The notes below the pieces were generated by a model. The model was not told the DNA's origin and did no database searches. It saw only the letters and a list, made by a program, of their open reading frames with translations. The translations under genes and the position numbers were made by a program. Of a DNA stretch of 64,000 nucleotides, positions 4,218-51,251 are shown in pieces. Within the stretch, counting starts at the first letter, position 1; each line of letters begins with the position of its first letter. The stretch is taken from the sequence record NC_042013.1; one strand, written 5' to 3'.

Positions 4218-4535
4218 TTATTCAGACGTTCGAATAACGACAAGGCAATCATCAGAAAAACCATCACAAACCATGAAACGATAAAGTTCTGGCTTTTCAG
4301 TTCGAACATATTCAAGAGTATCAAAATCATTCGAGTAATAAATTGAGTACAATGGCGATCCGTCGCAATCACGGGTATGCTCACATACATAACCTCGAAT
4401 GCCGTGATGATCGGAATAGTGAAGATTAACCTCAACCAAAGTCTTAAGAGGAATTTTATGCTGAATTAGCATGTTCTTAGGGCGATCAAGTTGAGCAACG
4501 TTAATATATGTGGTCACGTCAATTATCCTTTCCAA
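4218..4535 (-). CDS. Hypothetical phage protein (RDCDGSPLY motif)
   Basis: ORF overlapping RNA ligase stop. Confidence 0.7.
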   Translation of the reverse strand: MERIIDVTTYINVAQLDRPKNMLIQHKIPLKTLVEVNLHYSDHHGIRGYVCEHTRDCDGSPLYSIYYSNDFDTLEYVRTEKPELYRFMVCDGFSDDCLVVIRTSE

Positions 4536-5208
4536 TTAATTTGTTTGGGGTCCAATTCTTGGTCCAGTGTTGATCTGTTTGAACGTGGTTTTTTCTTACA
4601 AATTTAGCTACGTTGTCTTTGAAATCAGAAACATCAAACGTTTCAACCGACGAAACCACTATACCCTCTACAGCGGTAGTGTCAATACTGTTACAAATAC
4701 TTTTGACTTTTTTCTCATCCCAAATACCACGATACAATACAGGAACAACAGTAAGATTAAGTTCTTCGGCCCAAAGCAAACATTCGTCCCAATGCAATCT
4801 ACGTGTATCATCATACACCCCGAACATTTCAAAATAGTCGGTCAAATTGTCATATGAAATAGAATGCTTAGCATATAAATTTTCACCGCATACACGTAGA
4901 GTGTCAGGGAGACGGAAAGAAACCTCCCGCCATTTCTTGATGAAAAAACTTTGATATTCTTTCCCTGTTCCATCTACACTACGTGCGTGTACATAACCAT
5001 CAGCGTATCCGGTGGTATTTTCGCCGTCGCGTTTTTCGGTAACAATAACTTCTTTACCAACAAAGGAACTACAATCTCGAAGTTTCTTATCATCCGAAGT
5101 TGCTCCTTCCGACCACGGTAAATGAAAAGTGCGCGGATAGGAATGACGTTGAATATTATTCACCTTCGACAACCGTATATTTTTCGATTTCGGATGTTTC
5201 ATTAGCAA
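4519..5208 (-). CDS. RNA ligase (ATP-dependent nucleotidyltransferase family)
   Basis: YPRTFHLPWS N-terminus, motif I TEKRDGEN, CGENLYAKHSI, VEGIVV, AKFVRKNHVQT; exact start uncertain. Confidence 0.8.
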   Translation of the reverse strand: MLMKHPKSKNIRLSKVNNIQRHSYPRTFHLPWSEGATSDDKKLRDCSSFVGKEVIVTEKRDGENTTGYADGYVHARSVDGTGKEYQSFFIKKWREVSFRLPDTLRVCGENLYAKHSISYDNLTDYFEMFGVYDDTRRLHWDECLLWAEELNLTVVPVLYRGIWDEKKVKSICNSIDTTAVEGIVVSSVETFDVSDFKDNVAKFVRKNHVQTDQHWTKNWTPNKLIGKDN

Positions 5209-6155: not shown

Positions 6156-6280
6156 TGGTAGGCGCTGTCGGGCTCGAACCGACGACCCTCTGCTTACTGT
6201 TGCCTTAGTGGATTTGCACCACGTATCCCGTTTTGGATCAGGCCAAAGGCAGATGCTCTAACCAACTGAGCTAAGCGCCC
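6156..6280 (-). tRNA. tRNA with 48-nt anticodon-loop insertion; isotype unresolved
   Basis: Acceptor GGGCGCT/AGCGCCT, D-arm GCTC/GAGC, anticodon stem TCTGC/GCAGA enclosing 55 nt, T-arm GTCGG-TTCGAGC-CCGAC, encoded ACCA. Confidence 0.85.
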
Positions 6281-6346: not shown

Positions 6347-7009
6347 ATGTTTAAATGCGAAGAAATGTCAAAATCGGCATTTAAAAGAATGAAAATTAAA
6401 AATGATGAATATTTTTGTGTAATGTGTGATGTTAAAGGAGAATGGAACGGCAAACCATTGTCATTACACGTAGATCATATAGATGGAAATAATCGTAATA
6501 ACAAAATAGATAACTTAAGAATGTTATGCCCTAACTGTCATTCACAGACAGAAACGTATTGTGGAAATAATAATAAAAGAGGATACCACGCCGGAAATCT
6601 CAAAGTTAGTGACGAGAAGCTTTTAAAAGCTATGAAAGAAAATGTTCTACCAACGGACGCGTTGAAATCTGTAAAACTGGCCGGTGCGGGCAATTATGCT
6701 AGAATATATAAATTAGCGGAAACCCACAGTATCGAGCATATGAAAAGGAAAGAAAAGCCGGAATATTCATTTGAATGTAATCATTGCAACAATAAGGTGC
6801 ACGTCACTAATAAAAAAGATATTAAAAAATATTGTTCAATAGAGTGTTTTAGGACCAGCCGTGATAAAGATGCACCATTGACCAATATCTCAGTTAATGA
6901 AATAATTTCAAAACTTGAGGAATTTAATGGTAACTTTACACGAACTGGTCTGTTTTTCAAAGTATCTGATAATGCTATAAGAAAAAAGATAAAATCCTAT
7001 TATCCTTGA
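6347..7009 (+). CDS. Free-standing HNH homing endonuclease
   Basis: CVMC ... LHVDHIDGNNRNNKIDNLRMLCPNCHSQT; second Cys cluster CNHC...YCSIEC; start probably ATG 6347. Confidence 0.88.
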   Translation: MFKCEEMSKSAFKRMKIKNDEYFCVMCDVKGEWNGKPLSLHVDHIDGNNRNNKIDNLRMLCPNCHSQTETYCGNNNKRGYHAGNLKVSDEKLLKAMKENVLPTDALKSVKLAGAGNYARIYKLAETHSIEHMKRKEKPEYSFECNHCNNKVHVTNKKDIKKYCSIECFRTSRDKDAPLTNISVNEIISKLEEFNGNFTRTGLFFKVSDNAIRKKIKSYYP

Positions 7010-14923: not shown

Positions 14924-17515
14924 TTAAAATCTTTTCACTGCATTAATAAAGTCGGTATCAACATCTCCACCAAGGGTGAAACCTGTTTGGAGTCTATCTT
15001 TAGATACTCGGTCATAGTAAGATGAAATTTTTCCATCCATAGAATCCACCAAACCTGAAATCAAATTAGTTGACGCCATAGAATTGCTAAATTCCTTACG
15101 AACGCGTGCCATAACTTGTTTCTTAAAAGTTTCATAATCTTTTTCATAAACTGAAACTTGTGGAAGAACTAATTCCAAAAAAGAATATATATCTTTAGCG
15201 GTTGATTGACCACGGTTGTATGCTTCTGTCAAATCGCCTTTGATAATTTTTTCAATTTTCTTAACGGTTGATGACTTGATACCTTTGTCATATGCAACGT
15301 CGATGCTTGGTGTTCCTTTAACATCAAAATCGCGATCTGCTGCCTCGCCAGCCATAAAAATAATGTCATCAGCGGTAGACTGGATCACCTCTTTAATTAC
15401 TTCGGGAGTGTCATCGGAGTCGATAAGAGATTTGATATCTTCAATATTTTGTGGTTTTGACAAATATTCATCAATCCAATCGGTTGCAAATGAAACAATT
15501 GTATCCTCGGACACATCTTCTCCAATATAATTCTCAAAAATATAATCGTGGTTTTCAAGAAAACCTTTGACTTTTGATCTAAACAATTCGGAAGCCTTTC
15601 CAGACAAATCAAAACGTTCAGAAATATCAAACTCGTTATGGAGGTAATGTTCGATAGAGTCAATAATTTCTTTTGATGAATATTTCATATCGTCCTGTTC
15701 AGGTGACGGACGGCCAAAATTAAAATCAGAACCGTATTTGTCAATGAAATCTCTTACATTAAAAGTAATTGAATCAGCTTTGCGTTCGTCTTCTTCAAAT
15801 CCTTTATAACCGTCTGGATTATTGTCCTCGAAAATGAAACCATGATCTTTTTCAAGAGCAGGTTTTACGTACTTATAGAATACGTTTTCAGCTTCTTCCT
15901 CGGCAGCAATTGGATTATTGTATTGACCAATATCAACAAGAAAATTAGCGATAGACGGAATAACTGCTTGAGCCTCATATCGTTTAGATTTATCTCTTGG
16001 ATCACGACCTAACCAATAATCAGTCCCGTATTCTTTAAAAAAACCATTTACGTCAAAACTCTCAAAAACAAATCCAAGTTCTTTTTCCATTGGCTTTTTG
16101 ACGAAGTTTTTGAAAATTTCGGATGCTTTACCGTGAGCGTCTTTAACTGTTTTATATCCACCAAAATCAACAAGGTACTGTGCAATAGAATCAACAACCT
16201 CGGATTTCTTTGTATGACCTACAACAAACTCCACGCCATATTGCTTAAAGAATTGCTTAACATCGAAACTGGTTTTACCTTCGACTACGGAAACATTAAC
16301 CCAACGATCAAATGCTAAAACTTCTGGAGTTTCATGTTCAAATGACAATGTACCGAAAACACCACGAATCGCTTTTACAAAATCTTCATAATGATTTGGA
16401 ATCAACGTATCAATACGATCATCTGCGTATGCTTTCATCAAACAAACAAGTGCACACGCCAAATCTTCCATTGAGTACACACCGTCAGTAAGATCGATAC
16501 CACGGGAATCAGCCTCTTGCTTTATTGCGACCAATGTATCAATCATATATTGACCGAGTTCGGGGTCGCCCTCTACGCCGTACGTCGCAATGTCTTCGTC
16601 TAATGCCTCGATAACAGCATTATGTTCCACGATGTCAACCAGCTTCTTAGTAAAGAATTGTTCGTTTGGATTTAGTTTTTCGTTGTGACGTAGTTTGTCA
16701 ACAACAGACCCAATATATTCTTTCAATGCACTATTATTCAAGTTAGAATTTACAACACGTTCTAATTCTGATGCAAATCGTAAATTATTCGAGCTAAACT
16801 TTTCTTCTTTTGCTGGCTTTACAATATGGACATCAAGTTTGTTTGAGATGATATCTTTGAAACCTTTTGCAAGATTTGTAATTTCATTAGCGTTAACGTC
16901 GCGGTCTAATCCGGTTCGTGTATTAACCCATTCAGTTGCATACTTCAAAAACACGTCACTGTTTTCTTGCAAAACCGCAGATGTAGTTTCAACAAGATAT
17001 TTCGTAGATTCGGTATATCCCTCATTACAAACGATATTATTGCCGAATACTGCAAAGTCAACTCCCTCTTTAAGGCCGAGCGATTTTGTCATATGACGCT
17101 GCAAATCGACACGTTGTGCAGCATTCGAAAGGGAGATTGTTTTAAACATTTTTGTTTCCTTGTTTTCGCTCACAATAGGTGTCGCCTGATATGCAAAATC
17201 CTTAGGCGACAACTTTTTACCATATTTACGAATATCAAAAAGAAGACCGTATTGAACCGCGATATTCCTAAGACTTGAAATTAATGAGGCAATATCTTTT
17301 GCATCAATATTGTTACCAAAATATAACGATATAAAAGAATCGTTATTGTCATCTTCCAAAACAATCATCAGTCTATCTGGAACCGCAAAAAATTTACGAG
17401 CATCCTTGGTTTTATAAATTTTATTACCTTGTTCATCAAACAAAGTTACTTTGCGACCAGAACTTTTCAATAGATTGAAAATGTCATTCGCCGCGCTACT
17501 GAACATATTAGCCAT
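14924..17515 (-). CDS. Large hypothetical (probably virion) protein with three internal repeats
   Basis: 863-aa ORF behind GGTAAATA late-type motif, directly after terL. Confidence 0.75.
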   Translation of the reverse strand: MANMFSSAANDIFNLLKSSGRKVTLFDEQGNKIYKTKDARKFFAVPDRLMIVLEDDNNDSFISLYFGNNIDAKDIASLISSLRNIAVQYGLLFDIRKYGKKLSPKDFAYQATPIVSENKETKMFKTISLSNAAQRVDLQRHMTKSLGLKEGVDFAVFGNNIVCNEGYTESTKYLVETTSAVLQENSDVFLKYATEWVNTRTGLDRDVNANEITNLAKGFKDIISNKLDVHIVKPAKEEKFSSNNLRFASELERVVNSNLNNSALKEYIGSVVDKLRHNEKLNPNEQFFTKKLVDIVEHNAVIEALDEDIATYGVEGDPELGQYMIDTLVAIKQEADSRGIDLTDGVYSMEDLACALVCLMKAYADDRIDTLIPNHYEDFVKAIRGVFGTLSFEHETPEVLAFDRWVNVSVVEGKTSFDVKQFFKQYGVEFVVGHTKKSEVVDSIAQYLVDFGGYKTVKDAHGKASEIFKNFVKKPMEKELGFVFESFDVNGFFKEYGTDYWLGRDPRDKSKRYEAQAVIPSIANFLVDIGQYNNPIAAEEEAENVFYKYVKPALEKDHGFIFEDNNPDGYKGFEEDERKADSITFNVRDFIDKYGSDFNFGRPSPEQDDMKYSSKEIIDSIEHYLHNEFDISERFDLSGKASELFRSKVKGFLENHDYIFENYIGEDVSEDTIVSFATDWIDEYLSKPQNIEDIKSLIDSDDTPEVIKEVIQSTADDIIFMAGEAADRDFDVKGTPSIDVAYDKGIKSSTVKKIEKIIKGDLTEAYNRGQSTAKDIYSFLELVLPQVSVYEKDYETFKKQVMARVRKEFSNSMASTNLISGLVDSMDGKISSYYDRVSKDRLQTGFTLGGDVDTDFINAVKRF

Positions 17516-50889: not shown

Positions 50890-51251
50890 TGGTGTCCCCG
50901 ACCGGAGTCGAACCGGTACTCATTAAGAAACGGATTTTCATACCACTATAGCTTTCGCTACCAAATTTCTTTGTTTGTGGTCTGGACTATACCTTGAACA
51001 TATAGGAATTTACCGTGCGCGTTAATCGCTCTTGCGGGCTTTTCATCCGCGTCGTTTCCTACTTAGTTCCGAACCGTCTAGTCTCTACACCTTCAACGGA
51101 TTTCTCCGAAGCTTGGCTCGGTATTAGCAGTTTGAATTTCTTCAAGTTAAGCCTTCACCGAATTTGATTCGTTCTACTTTAAAGCTTTCGCTTTAAGCAC
51201 TCAAATTTTAATCCATAAGTCCGTCGCGTCTACCAATTCCGCCACGGGGAC
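50890..51251 (-). tRNA. trnL-UAA: tRNA-Leu(UAA) interrupted by a group I intron
   Basis: 5' exon 51251-51217 ends GGACTT; 3' exon 50938-50890 starts AAAATCCGT; spliced loop CT-TAA-AA; class II variable arm; CCA. Confidence 0.92.
50939..51216 (-). mobile_element. Group I intron (IC3-like), 278 nt, no ORF
   Basis: P1 ACUU/GAGU with U-G at splice site; AAATTCGGTGAA, AATACCGAGC, GTAGAGACTA, AAGGTATAGTCC; P3 CGAATC/GGTTCG; terminal G. Confidence 0.92.

Follow-up and report, generated by a model that had tools for sequence, protein, structure and literature searches.

Can the self-splicing group I introns of bacteriophages reside in transfer RNA (tRNA) genes? The question is raised by a locus of Agrobacterium phage Atu_ph07 (NC_042013.1 / MF403008.1), a jumbo phage of 490,380 bp with A. 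tumefaciens C58 as its host. A 2014 review placed all phage group I introns then known in protein genes, despite the many tRNA genes that phages carry (PMC3984707), and a preliminary description of the locus had likewise contrasted it with the classic phage introns of protein genes. Here we analyze a window of 64,000 nt, by which we mean the whole stretch between bases 62001 and 126000 of the record (35-41% G+C), so that a window position equals the record position minus 62,000. At positions 50890-51251 this window very probably contains a functional tRNA-Leu(UAA) gene that is split between U34 and A35 by an IC3-like group I intron devoid of any open reading frame (ORF).

The gene was delineated with ARAGORN, which by default reports no tRNA anywhere in the 64-kb window and, with introns allowed, predicts a split tRNA-Leu(taa) at c[50890,51251], interrupted at gene position 36 by an intron of 278 nt. 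The preliminary description had given exactly these coordinates, leaving unstated the strand, which is minus, and had assigned the same tRNA identity and intron length. The 35-nt 5′ exon (51251-51217, ending in ...GGACUU) supplies the 5′ strand of the acceptor stem, the D arm, the 5′ strand of the anticodon stem and nucleotides C32, U33 and U34. The 49-nt 3′ exon (50938-50890) supplies A35, A36, A37 and A38, the 3′ strand of the anticodon stem, the variable arm, the T arm, the 3′ strand of the acceptor stem, A73 and an encoded CCA. According to ARAGORN, the joined exons form an 84-nt class-II cloverleaf with a 7-bp acceptor stem, a variable arm, the anticodon UAA in the loop CUUAAAA, the discriminator A73 and CCA, and the exon anticodon stem (ACGGA/UCCGU) is intact, with five Watson-Crick pairs. 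The 278 nt between them (51216-50939; 41% G+C) are free of open frames, as had been claimed, with stops throughout all six reading frames. The junction, CUU/a...g/AAAA, lies between nucleotides 34 and 35 and is the only one that yields U-1 together with a terminal intron G (omega-G). The proposal that this is the site used in cyanobacteria and plastids holds, since the junction of the Nostoc trnL intron is written identically (Williams 2020, bioRxiv 10.1101/2020.01.27.920355).

Comparison with Rfam, which had been put forward as a check, gives a divided answer. The Intron_gpI model (RF00028) matches positions 51220-50959 over its full length with 48.9 bits (E 2.9e-11 in a 901-nt search), but the gathering scan misses the intron because its score is 1.1 bits short of the cut-off, and an E-value scan of the whole window loses the locus as well, at its speed filters. 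The lower score probably reflects two peripheral insertions, a P5a hairpin in loop L5 and an enlarged loop L8. A family profile built from 31 homologous phage introns, leaving out the window's own, matches at E 2.3e-30 (51225-51054) and 3.2e-17 (51004-50930), on either side of the P8 insert, with no other match in the 64 kb, and the intron folds better than 200 of 200 shuffled sequences (z = -3.15). Given the ARAGORN map, the Rfam match, the family profile and the fold z-score, the split tRNA-Leu(UAA) gene is real at these coordinates, far beyond chance.

Helices were drawn by hand on the minus strand and their complementarity was checked by script (window coordinate = 51217 - intron position); conservation was read from an alignment of 32 sequences, the window intron and 31 distinct viral homologues, to which the counts below refer. 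All helices from P1 to P10 can be located in the window sequence, so that the earlier statement that P1, P3, P7, P10 and omega-G are intact stands, and the core motifs then quoted, GCCAAGCUUCGG and GAAGGUGUAGAGACUAGACGG, are present together with U-1 and omega-G. P1 joins exon CUU (51219-51217) to the guide GAG (51202-51200, intron 15-17), with the U-1.G pair at the splice site; its C-G and U-A pairs occur in 32/32 sequences and the U.G pair (51217/51202) in 31/32. The neighboring UUU (51205-51203, intron 12-14) can pair with exon AAA (50938-50936) as P10, and these pairs are kept in 23-31 of the 32. P2 (51175-51199, intron 18-42) consists of 10 bp with one bulged A and a GAAA tetraloop, and nine of its ten pairs show compensatory changes. 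P3 (CGAAUC, 51166-51171, with GGUUCG, 51075-51070; intron 46-51 / 142-147) is paired in 100% of cells, with compensatory changes in 4/6 pairs. In the P4-P6 domain (51090-51162), P4 (UUCGG/CCGAG, intron 55-59 / 96-100) and P6 are invariant, and P5 and P6a covary. P5 and the extra P5a hairpin occupy intron positions 64-91, P5a being a 14-nt hairpin with a GAAA loop (51145-51132) that had not been remarked upon before, and P6 and the GAAA-capped P6a occupy positions 101-127.

In P7, a 5′ strand made up of G, a bulged A and GACUA (51085-51079) pairs with UAGUCC (50989-50984; intron 132-138 / 228-233); five pairs are invariant and one changes from A-U to U-A in 10/32 sequences. J7/3 (GAC) runs between P7 and the 3′ strand of P3, within 51070-51085, and the crossing of P3 and P7 forms the group I pseudoknot. 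We take the G-C pair of P7 to be the guanosine site, by analogy with Tetrahymena and Azoarcus. P8 (50996-51069) rests on a basal stem, GAAC/GUUC (intron 148-151 / 218-221), with compensatory changes in two of its four pairs. At its base, ACUAAG...UAUGU resembles the motif that we assume as reference, the 11-nt GAAA-tetraloop receptor, with the outer pair altered and compensated; the GAAA loop L2 and this receptor-like P8 presumably correspond to the Azoarcus arrangement. Beyond the receptor-like motif, P8a (intron 156-214) closes the 47-nt L8 insert (intron 162-208), which corresponds to the enlargement of P8 described earlier. The three-way P9 element (50943-50980, intron 237-274), in which CCAC/GUGG closes a GAAA-capped P9a and P9b, is also present in the local fold, with compensatory changes in all four P9b pairs, and omega-G, the last intron nucleotide (50939, intron 278), is invariant in 32/32 sequences.

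Over the whole alignment, pairing is found in 95.1% of pair cells and falls to 31-45% when the partner strand is slid by 1-3 columns, and compensatory changes are found in 29 of 57 pairs; none of 500 shuffles matches the observed values. Covariation is seen in P2, P3, P6a, P8 and P9b, with P4, P6 and most of P7 invariant, and the window copy retains every column that is invariant in the alignment. IC3 introns are characterized by a single P2, the absence of P2.1 and P5abc, short P5, P6 and P8 helices, and P9 at the 3′ end, and the helices found here fit that periphery in this general description, which is not a curated definition.

Is this gene peculiar to one phage? A BLAST search of 50,697 phage records with the gene and its surroundings (2.8 kb) returned no syntenic relative and no intron-less allele. 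The sole true homologue among these records is the uncultured 735-kb phage LR756501/LR756503, in which ARAGORN identifies a tRNA-Leu(UAA) whose 205-nt intron occupies the same site (LR756501); the other matches were to protein-gene introns with GIY-YIG endonucleases, in Alteromonas AD45 phages and in the dnaB gene of crAss-like phages. Selecting IMG/VR contigs by the J6/7-P7 string yielded at least 120, and in at least 41 of them, T4-like or tRNA-array contigs, the core lies inside a tRNA-Leu(UAA) that ARAGORN splits at 34/35. The junction GACUU / ... G / AAAAUC is found in all 43 Leu copies listed, and these loci have 29-46% G+C. Their neighbors include RIIA and baseplate hub/tail lysozyme genes (E down to 1e-135), from which we conclude that the contigs with the split gene are real phages. 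Many viral copies lie within arrays of up to 30 tRNA genes, and none of those arrays contains an unsplit Leu(UAA). On RF00028, four relatives score 56.8-65.7 bits and one further (L389) 72.9 bits. Among the other viral loci of the sample (L003-L122), the core also occurs in genes that ARAGORN labels Tyr(ata) (14 cases), Met(cat), Lys(ttt), Arg(tct) and others, labels that are unconfirmed, and 35 of the viral matches listed have no split tRNA call (ARAGORN). This suggests that phages harbor several classes of tRNA intron.

Bacterial counterparts were sought in GTDB genomes with a stricter core pattern, giving at least 120 loci in a sample that contains neither cyanobacterial sequences nor the host genome. 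At least 55 of these loci are tRNA-Leu(UAA) genes split at the same site, which among the matches listed belong mostly to Alphaproteobacteria (Rhizobiaceae, Bradyrhizobium, Caulobacterales, Sphingomonadales, Rhodobacterales) and Acidobacteriota; the remainder comprise tRNA-Arg(CCU), tRNA(CAU) and further isoacceptors. With more than 100 columns invariant in an alignment of 13 phage and bacterial sequences (8 of them bacterial genome loci), the two sets of introns are plainly homologous. In a maximum-likelihood tree of 84 introns, the window intron falls within a group of 29 viral sequences (SH-aLRT 97, nucleotides), with three viral sequences on the bacterial side. The possibility that the viral clade is an artefact of base composition was rejected, as the clade survives RY coding: the corresponding split holds the window and comprises 30 viral and no bacterial rows (SH-aLRT 93). 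Among the matches listed, the window intron is 78-80% identical to its best viral and 65-68% to its best bacterial relatives, transversion differences amount to 0.13 to viral versus 0.21 to bacterial copies, identity of the exons to the bacterial tRNA-Leu genes sampled stays below 80%, and the bacterial loci mostly have 55-70% G+C versus 41% for the window intron. These data are most likely to reflect a phage-borne trnL(UAA) intron lineage, related to the bacterial introns and inherited with the tRNA gene. The suggestion that phages act as vectors for tRNA introns gains little from them, since phage and bacterial introns are mostly separate on the tree. A contig assigned to a Rhodospirillaceae metagenome-assembled genome (CAZXSC010000006.1), with 42% G+C, holds a tRNA-Leu intron whose partner in the tree is a viral contig. 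The sequence may derive from a phage or prophage and have been binned with that genome, or it may record a transfer event.

The gene is missing from existing annotations. The 2018 genome paper lists 33 tRNAs found with tRNAscan-SE, among them only Leu-TAG and Leu-CAA for leucine; Leu-UAA is absent from that list and introns are unmentioned (PMC6102473). The RefSeq record NC_042013.1 has no tRNA features, its 714 features equaling the 714 ORFs reported in the paper. As had been supposed, decoding of UUA suits this phage. The codon makes up 13.9 per 1000 codons and 18% of leucine codons in 45 long ORFs of the window, compared with 2.0 per 1000 and 2% in 30 genes of the host pAt plasmid, a roughly seven-fold difference. 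The split gene is the only known decoder of UUA in the phage, which would explain why the ribozyme core has been kept intact.

The enlargement of P8 is a conserved, structured RNA module of about 45 nt rather than a random expansion. In Atu_ph07 the module spans 51003-51061 on the minus strand and combines the P8a closing stem, UAGGAA/UUCCUA, with a 47-nt core (51055-51009; 55% G+C) in which hairpin A (GCGG, the 9-nt loop AUGAAAAGC, CCGC) is followed by hairpin B. Using the 17-mer GCGGAUGAAAAGCCCGC and a gapped pattern, six further copies were recovered in leaders or spacers of tRNA clusters of phage type, two in viral contigs and four in metagenome contigs. One (L369:358-423) belongs to a 30-kb viral contig, of which the 14 kb fetched contain 32 tRNA genes, and another (L371:12800-12868) to a 323-kb viral contig; in both, the module directly follows a strong, sigma-70-like promoter (TTGACA-17-TATAGT/TATACT). 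A third (L387:1055-1118) ends 5 nt upstream of a tRNA-Lys gene, a fourth (L389:1-62) shares its locus with the group I-split tRNA of 72.9 bits mentioned above, and the remaining two (L388:322-383 and L390:1893-1954) lie on loci where ARAGORN finds a tRNA-Leu as the only tRNA. Three of the six free-standing copies are between tRNA genes or just upstream of one, and an intron location was shown for none of the six. Wherever the context can be read, the module is in a part of the pre-tRNA transcript that is later discarded.

Across the seven copies, the near-invariant core reads AACGACGCGG AUGAAAAGC CCGC(C)AAGAGC, a short hairpin, and then GCGCACGGUA. The closing stem varies in sequence and is constant in pairing, with compensatory changes in 5/6 pairs, hairpin A has one compensatory GCCG/CGGC variant, and 98.2% of pair cells are paired versus 21-44% in slid controls. 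The module matches no Rfam family, has a single occurrence in Atu_ph07 and none in the other GenBank phages, and an nhmmer search over all fetched loci found no further copies. A role in antitermination was considered and discarded, since the boxA-like string seen after the module in contig L371 does not recur consistently elsewhere. As far as is known, this small RNA motif, which is associated with phage tRNA clusters, has not been described before. A tentative extension of this finding would make the intron a carrier of non-coding cargo, whose splicing might free a stable functional RNA that binds a protein or ligand and acts in tRNA processing or phage-host conflict, with phages keeping an old trnL(UAA) intron lineage that could seed its patchy distribution among bacteria.

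How would such a gene be expressed? No promoter-like site is recognised just upstream, so it is probably co-transcribed with gp155 and the minus-strand genes above it. Transcription would probably end at an intrinsic-terminator-like hairpin and T-run (50837-50809, minus strand; 7 pairs, 5 of them G-C, with the tail TTTTTTGTTT), which follows the tRNA 3′ end at a distance of about 50 nt. The intron would take up its P3-P9 core fold, and an external guanosine would attack after U-1, in the U.G pair of P1 (CUU/GAG). Omega-G would next fill the P7 site, and ligation of the exons would restore the anticodon loop CUUAAAA. The predicted product is an 84-nt tRNA with an encoded CCA, reading UUA and UUG, codons that are far commoner in the phage (38% GC) than in the host. 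No homing endonuclease is encoded in the intron, and the neighbors gp155, gp154 and gp153 have no Pfam domain; the intron is most likely inherited together with its tRNA gene. Its L8 loop has acquired the conserved module, and excision of the intron would release the module as well.

Several observations weigh against this reading of a functional, self-splicing gene. We observe the structure of the gene, the conservation of its fold, its relatives and its codon bias, and from sequence we infer catalysis, expression and any role of the module. P10 consists of only three A-U pairs, with no covariation across the 32 sequences; P6a holds two U.U mismatches; the RF00028 score lies 1.1 bits under the Rfam gathering cut-off of 50 bits; no promoter-like site was recognised directly upstream of the split gene; and the 47-nt L8 insert and P5a hairpin, found in 0/31 viral homologues, could slow folding. 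The viral and bacterial samples are partial (at least 120 each) and chosen by core motif, so that the frequencies and the tree rest on partial samples, and an AU test does not reject placing the window intron among the bacterial ones (p = 0.40). The low score, the two insertions, the P6a mismatches and the lack of a nearby promoter could together portray a dead relic, in which an intron burdened by P5a and L8 no longer splices and no usable tRNA results. We judge this to be very unlikely. The positions invariant in the family are all kept and the core helices all pair, the exons form a clean cloverleaf with A73 and CCA, and the insertions are confined to the terminal loops L5 and L8, distal to the receptor-like motif of P8. 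The L8 insert, moreover, is a conserved module and not decay, and UUA is heavily used in a phage whose published list holds no other Leu(UAA) tRNA. RefSeq, for its part, annotates in NC_042013.1 a protein-coding gene here, gp154, a hypothetical protein of 38 aa (50941-50825, minus strand). That the region codes for protein is scarcely credible, and gp154 is almost certainly a false gene call: its ATG start is the last three bases of the intron (AUG), its frame then crosses the 3′ exon and enters the terminator hairpin, Pfam gives no match for it, and the conserved tRNA half accounts for the sequence.

Two further alternatives accept a working intron and differ on its history or use. The intron could have been captured recently from an alphaproteobacterial host, with or into a phage tRNA gene, instead of descending in an old phage lineage. 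Consistent with capture, tRNA-Leu(UAA) introns that share the core are, among the matches listed, a common feature of Alphaproteobacteria, including Rhizobiaceae and Hyphomicrobiales; some alphaproteobacterial introns (Hoeflea, Carnimonas) have P5 extended where the window intron does, and the AU test leaves room for a grouping of the window with bacteria. Such an origin is nonetheless unlikely in view of the closer identity and fewer transversions to viral copies, the viral grouping in both nucleotide and RY-coded trees, the phage-like G+C content of the intron and the divergence of its exons from sampled bacterial tRNA-Leu. Splicing might instead have been put to use, gating the supply of tRNA-Leu(UAA) in response to a guanosine nucleotide, Mg or an L8-binding factor, or keeping the unspliced precursor as a reserve proof against host anticodon nucleases. 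The near-invariant core and covarying stems of the L8 module, found elsewhere in discarded pre-tRNA parts, would fit this idea, as would the view of phage tRNAs as counter-measures against tRNA-targeting defences (literature cited in a passage of PMC10747093). It remains doubtful, given that the 31 other phage copies are conserved even though they lack the module and that regulation and the binding of a ligand or protein are conjecture here.

The split gene of Atu_ph07 can be set beside several known systems. Reinhold-Hurek and Shub reportedly described in 1992 small, ORF-less IC3 introns in the tRNA-Ile(CAU) of Azoarcus and the tRNA-Arg(CCU) of Agrobacterium. These reside in other tRNAs and at another anticodon-loop position than the intron of Atu_ph07, whose J6/7-P7 string is shared by the tRNA(CAU) and tRNA-Arg(CCU) introns of the bacterial sample. 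The preliminary description had likened the core to that of the Azoarcus intron, a putative resemblance; the core string itself recurs in many bacterial tRNA introns of several isoacceptors. The tRNA-Leu(UAA) introns of Alphaproteobacteria, Acidobacteriota and other bacteria have the same site, architecture and identical core strings, and differ in being GC-rich, in having a mostly longer P9a and in being separated on the tree from nearly all viral copies. Classical phage introns (T4 td/nrdB/nrdD, SPO1 DNA polymerase, Twort, crAss-like dnaB, AD45) are also self-splicing and found in virulent phages, and by BLAST share short stretches of P4-P6 and P7-P9 with the Atu_ph07 intron, but they interrupt protein genes and usually have homing endonuclease genes inside or adjoining them. 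The cyanobacterial and plastid trnL(UAA) intron (Anabaena/Nostoc; 'Leu.3Ug') shares host gene, site and junction with that of Atu_ph07, and both are small, ORF-less, bounded by U-1 and omega-G and dependent on the exon anticodon stem, the pairing of which is needed for splicing of the Anabaena intron (Zaug et al. 1993, as cited in a passage of PMC3984707). The Atu_ph07 copy differs in residing in the genome of a virulent phage and in its extra P5a hairpin and L8 RNA module. A survey that raised the bacterial tRNA introns to 21 types searched bacterial and archaeal genomes only (Williams 2020, bioRxiv 10.1101/2020.01.27.920355).

Microcoleus phage My-WqHQDG (OR578706.1; L247:1009-1294) offers another comparison, since its annotated 286-nt 'tRNA-Arg' is a tRNA-Arg(CCU) with a 213-nt insert. 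The 3′ part of this insert resembles P7-P9 of the Atu_ph07 intron family, with the difference that the tRNA is an Arg(CCU) split after the anticodon. The nature of the insert is less certain, because a search against Rfam at E<=0.001 gives no group I match. The annotation of OR578706 indicates that split phage tRNA genes are already in the databases without comment. No description of a phage tRNA gene with a group I intron came up in a search of full-text literature. The IC3-type trnL(UAA) intron is classical in kind; its setting in a phage tRNA gene, widespread among uncultured phages, and the L8 module are, as far as is known, new.

Further split tRNA genes are apparent in Atu_ph07. One, on the minus strand at 6156-6280, matches the Rfam tRNA model with 56.5 bits and a 51-nt anticodon-loop insert, and is called by ARAGORN as Lys(UUU) with a 48-nt insert between nucleotides 35 and 36. 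The insert begins and ends with G, is preceded by U, and can form a closing stem and two hairpins, one of them T-arm-like; at 48 nt it is too short to be a group I intron. The gene has its own near-perfect promoter (TTGACA-17-TATATT, ~6327-6299) and terminator (~6148-6112). The genome paper lists it as a 125-nt 'tRNA-Gln-TTG', with Lys-UUU unlisted, and also lists a 109-nt tRNA-Ser-TGA (PMC6102473). AAA codons show a three-fold enrichment in the phage. The insert is absent from all other GenBank phages, and a scan of viral contigs with a 15-mer from it was uninformative, as the T-arm-like string matches ordinary tRNAs. About 1 kb away, gp086 (4519-5163, minus strand) encodes an RNA ligase domain (PF09414, E 5e-25), and gp090 (6347-7009, plus strand), a free-standing HNH endonuclease (PF01844), lies divergently 67 nt from the split tRNA-Lys-like gene; both are possible players in tRNA repair, splicing or gene mobility. 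Outside the window, a tRNA-Tyr(GUA) at record positions 323904-324023 (L364:48904-49023) has a 26-nt insert right after the anticodon. With the long tRNA-Ser, these inserts indicate that Atu_ph07 has several tRNA genes with short anticodon-loop inserts. Apart from tRNAs, a sub-threshold match to the Rfam histone 3′ UTR stem-loop (15525-15570, minus strand; 30.8 bits against a cut-off of 34, E 7e-5) is probably a hairpin fitting by chance.

A cultured, published phage thus carries a trnL(UAA) intron of the classical type, and dozens of uncultured phage contigs contain the same split gene. The rule that phage group I introns occupy only protein genes looks like an artefact of annotation, because tRNA finders are run without an intron mode and the Rfam cut-off lies just above the scores of these small introns. 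For Atu_ph07 itself, the tRNA set is corrected by the gain of a Leu-UAA decoder and the removal of a spurious ORF, and the phage and its host form a tractable pair for the study of tRNA intron splicing during infection. The analysis also brings to light a small conserved RNA module tied to phage tRNA clusters, and phage sequences now enter the long-running question of how the tRNA-Leu(UAA) intron spread among bacteria and plastids.

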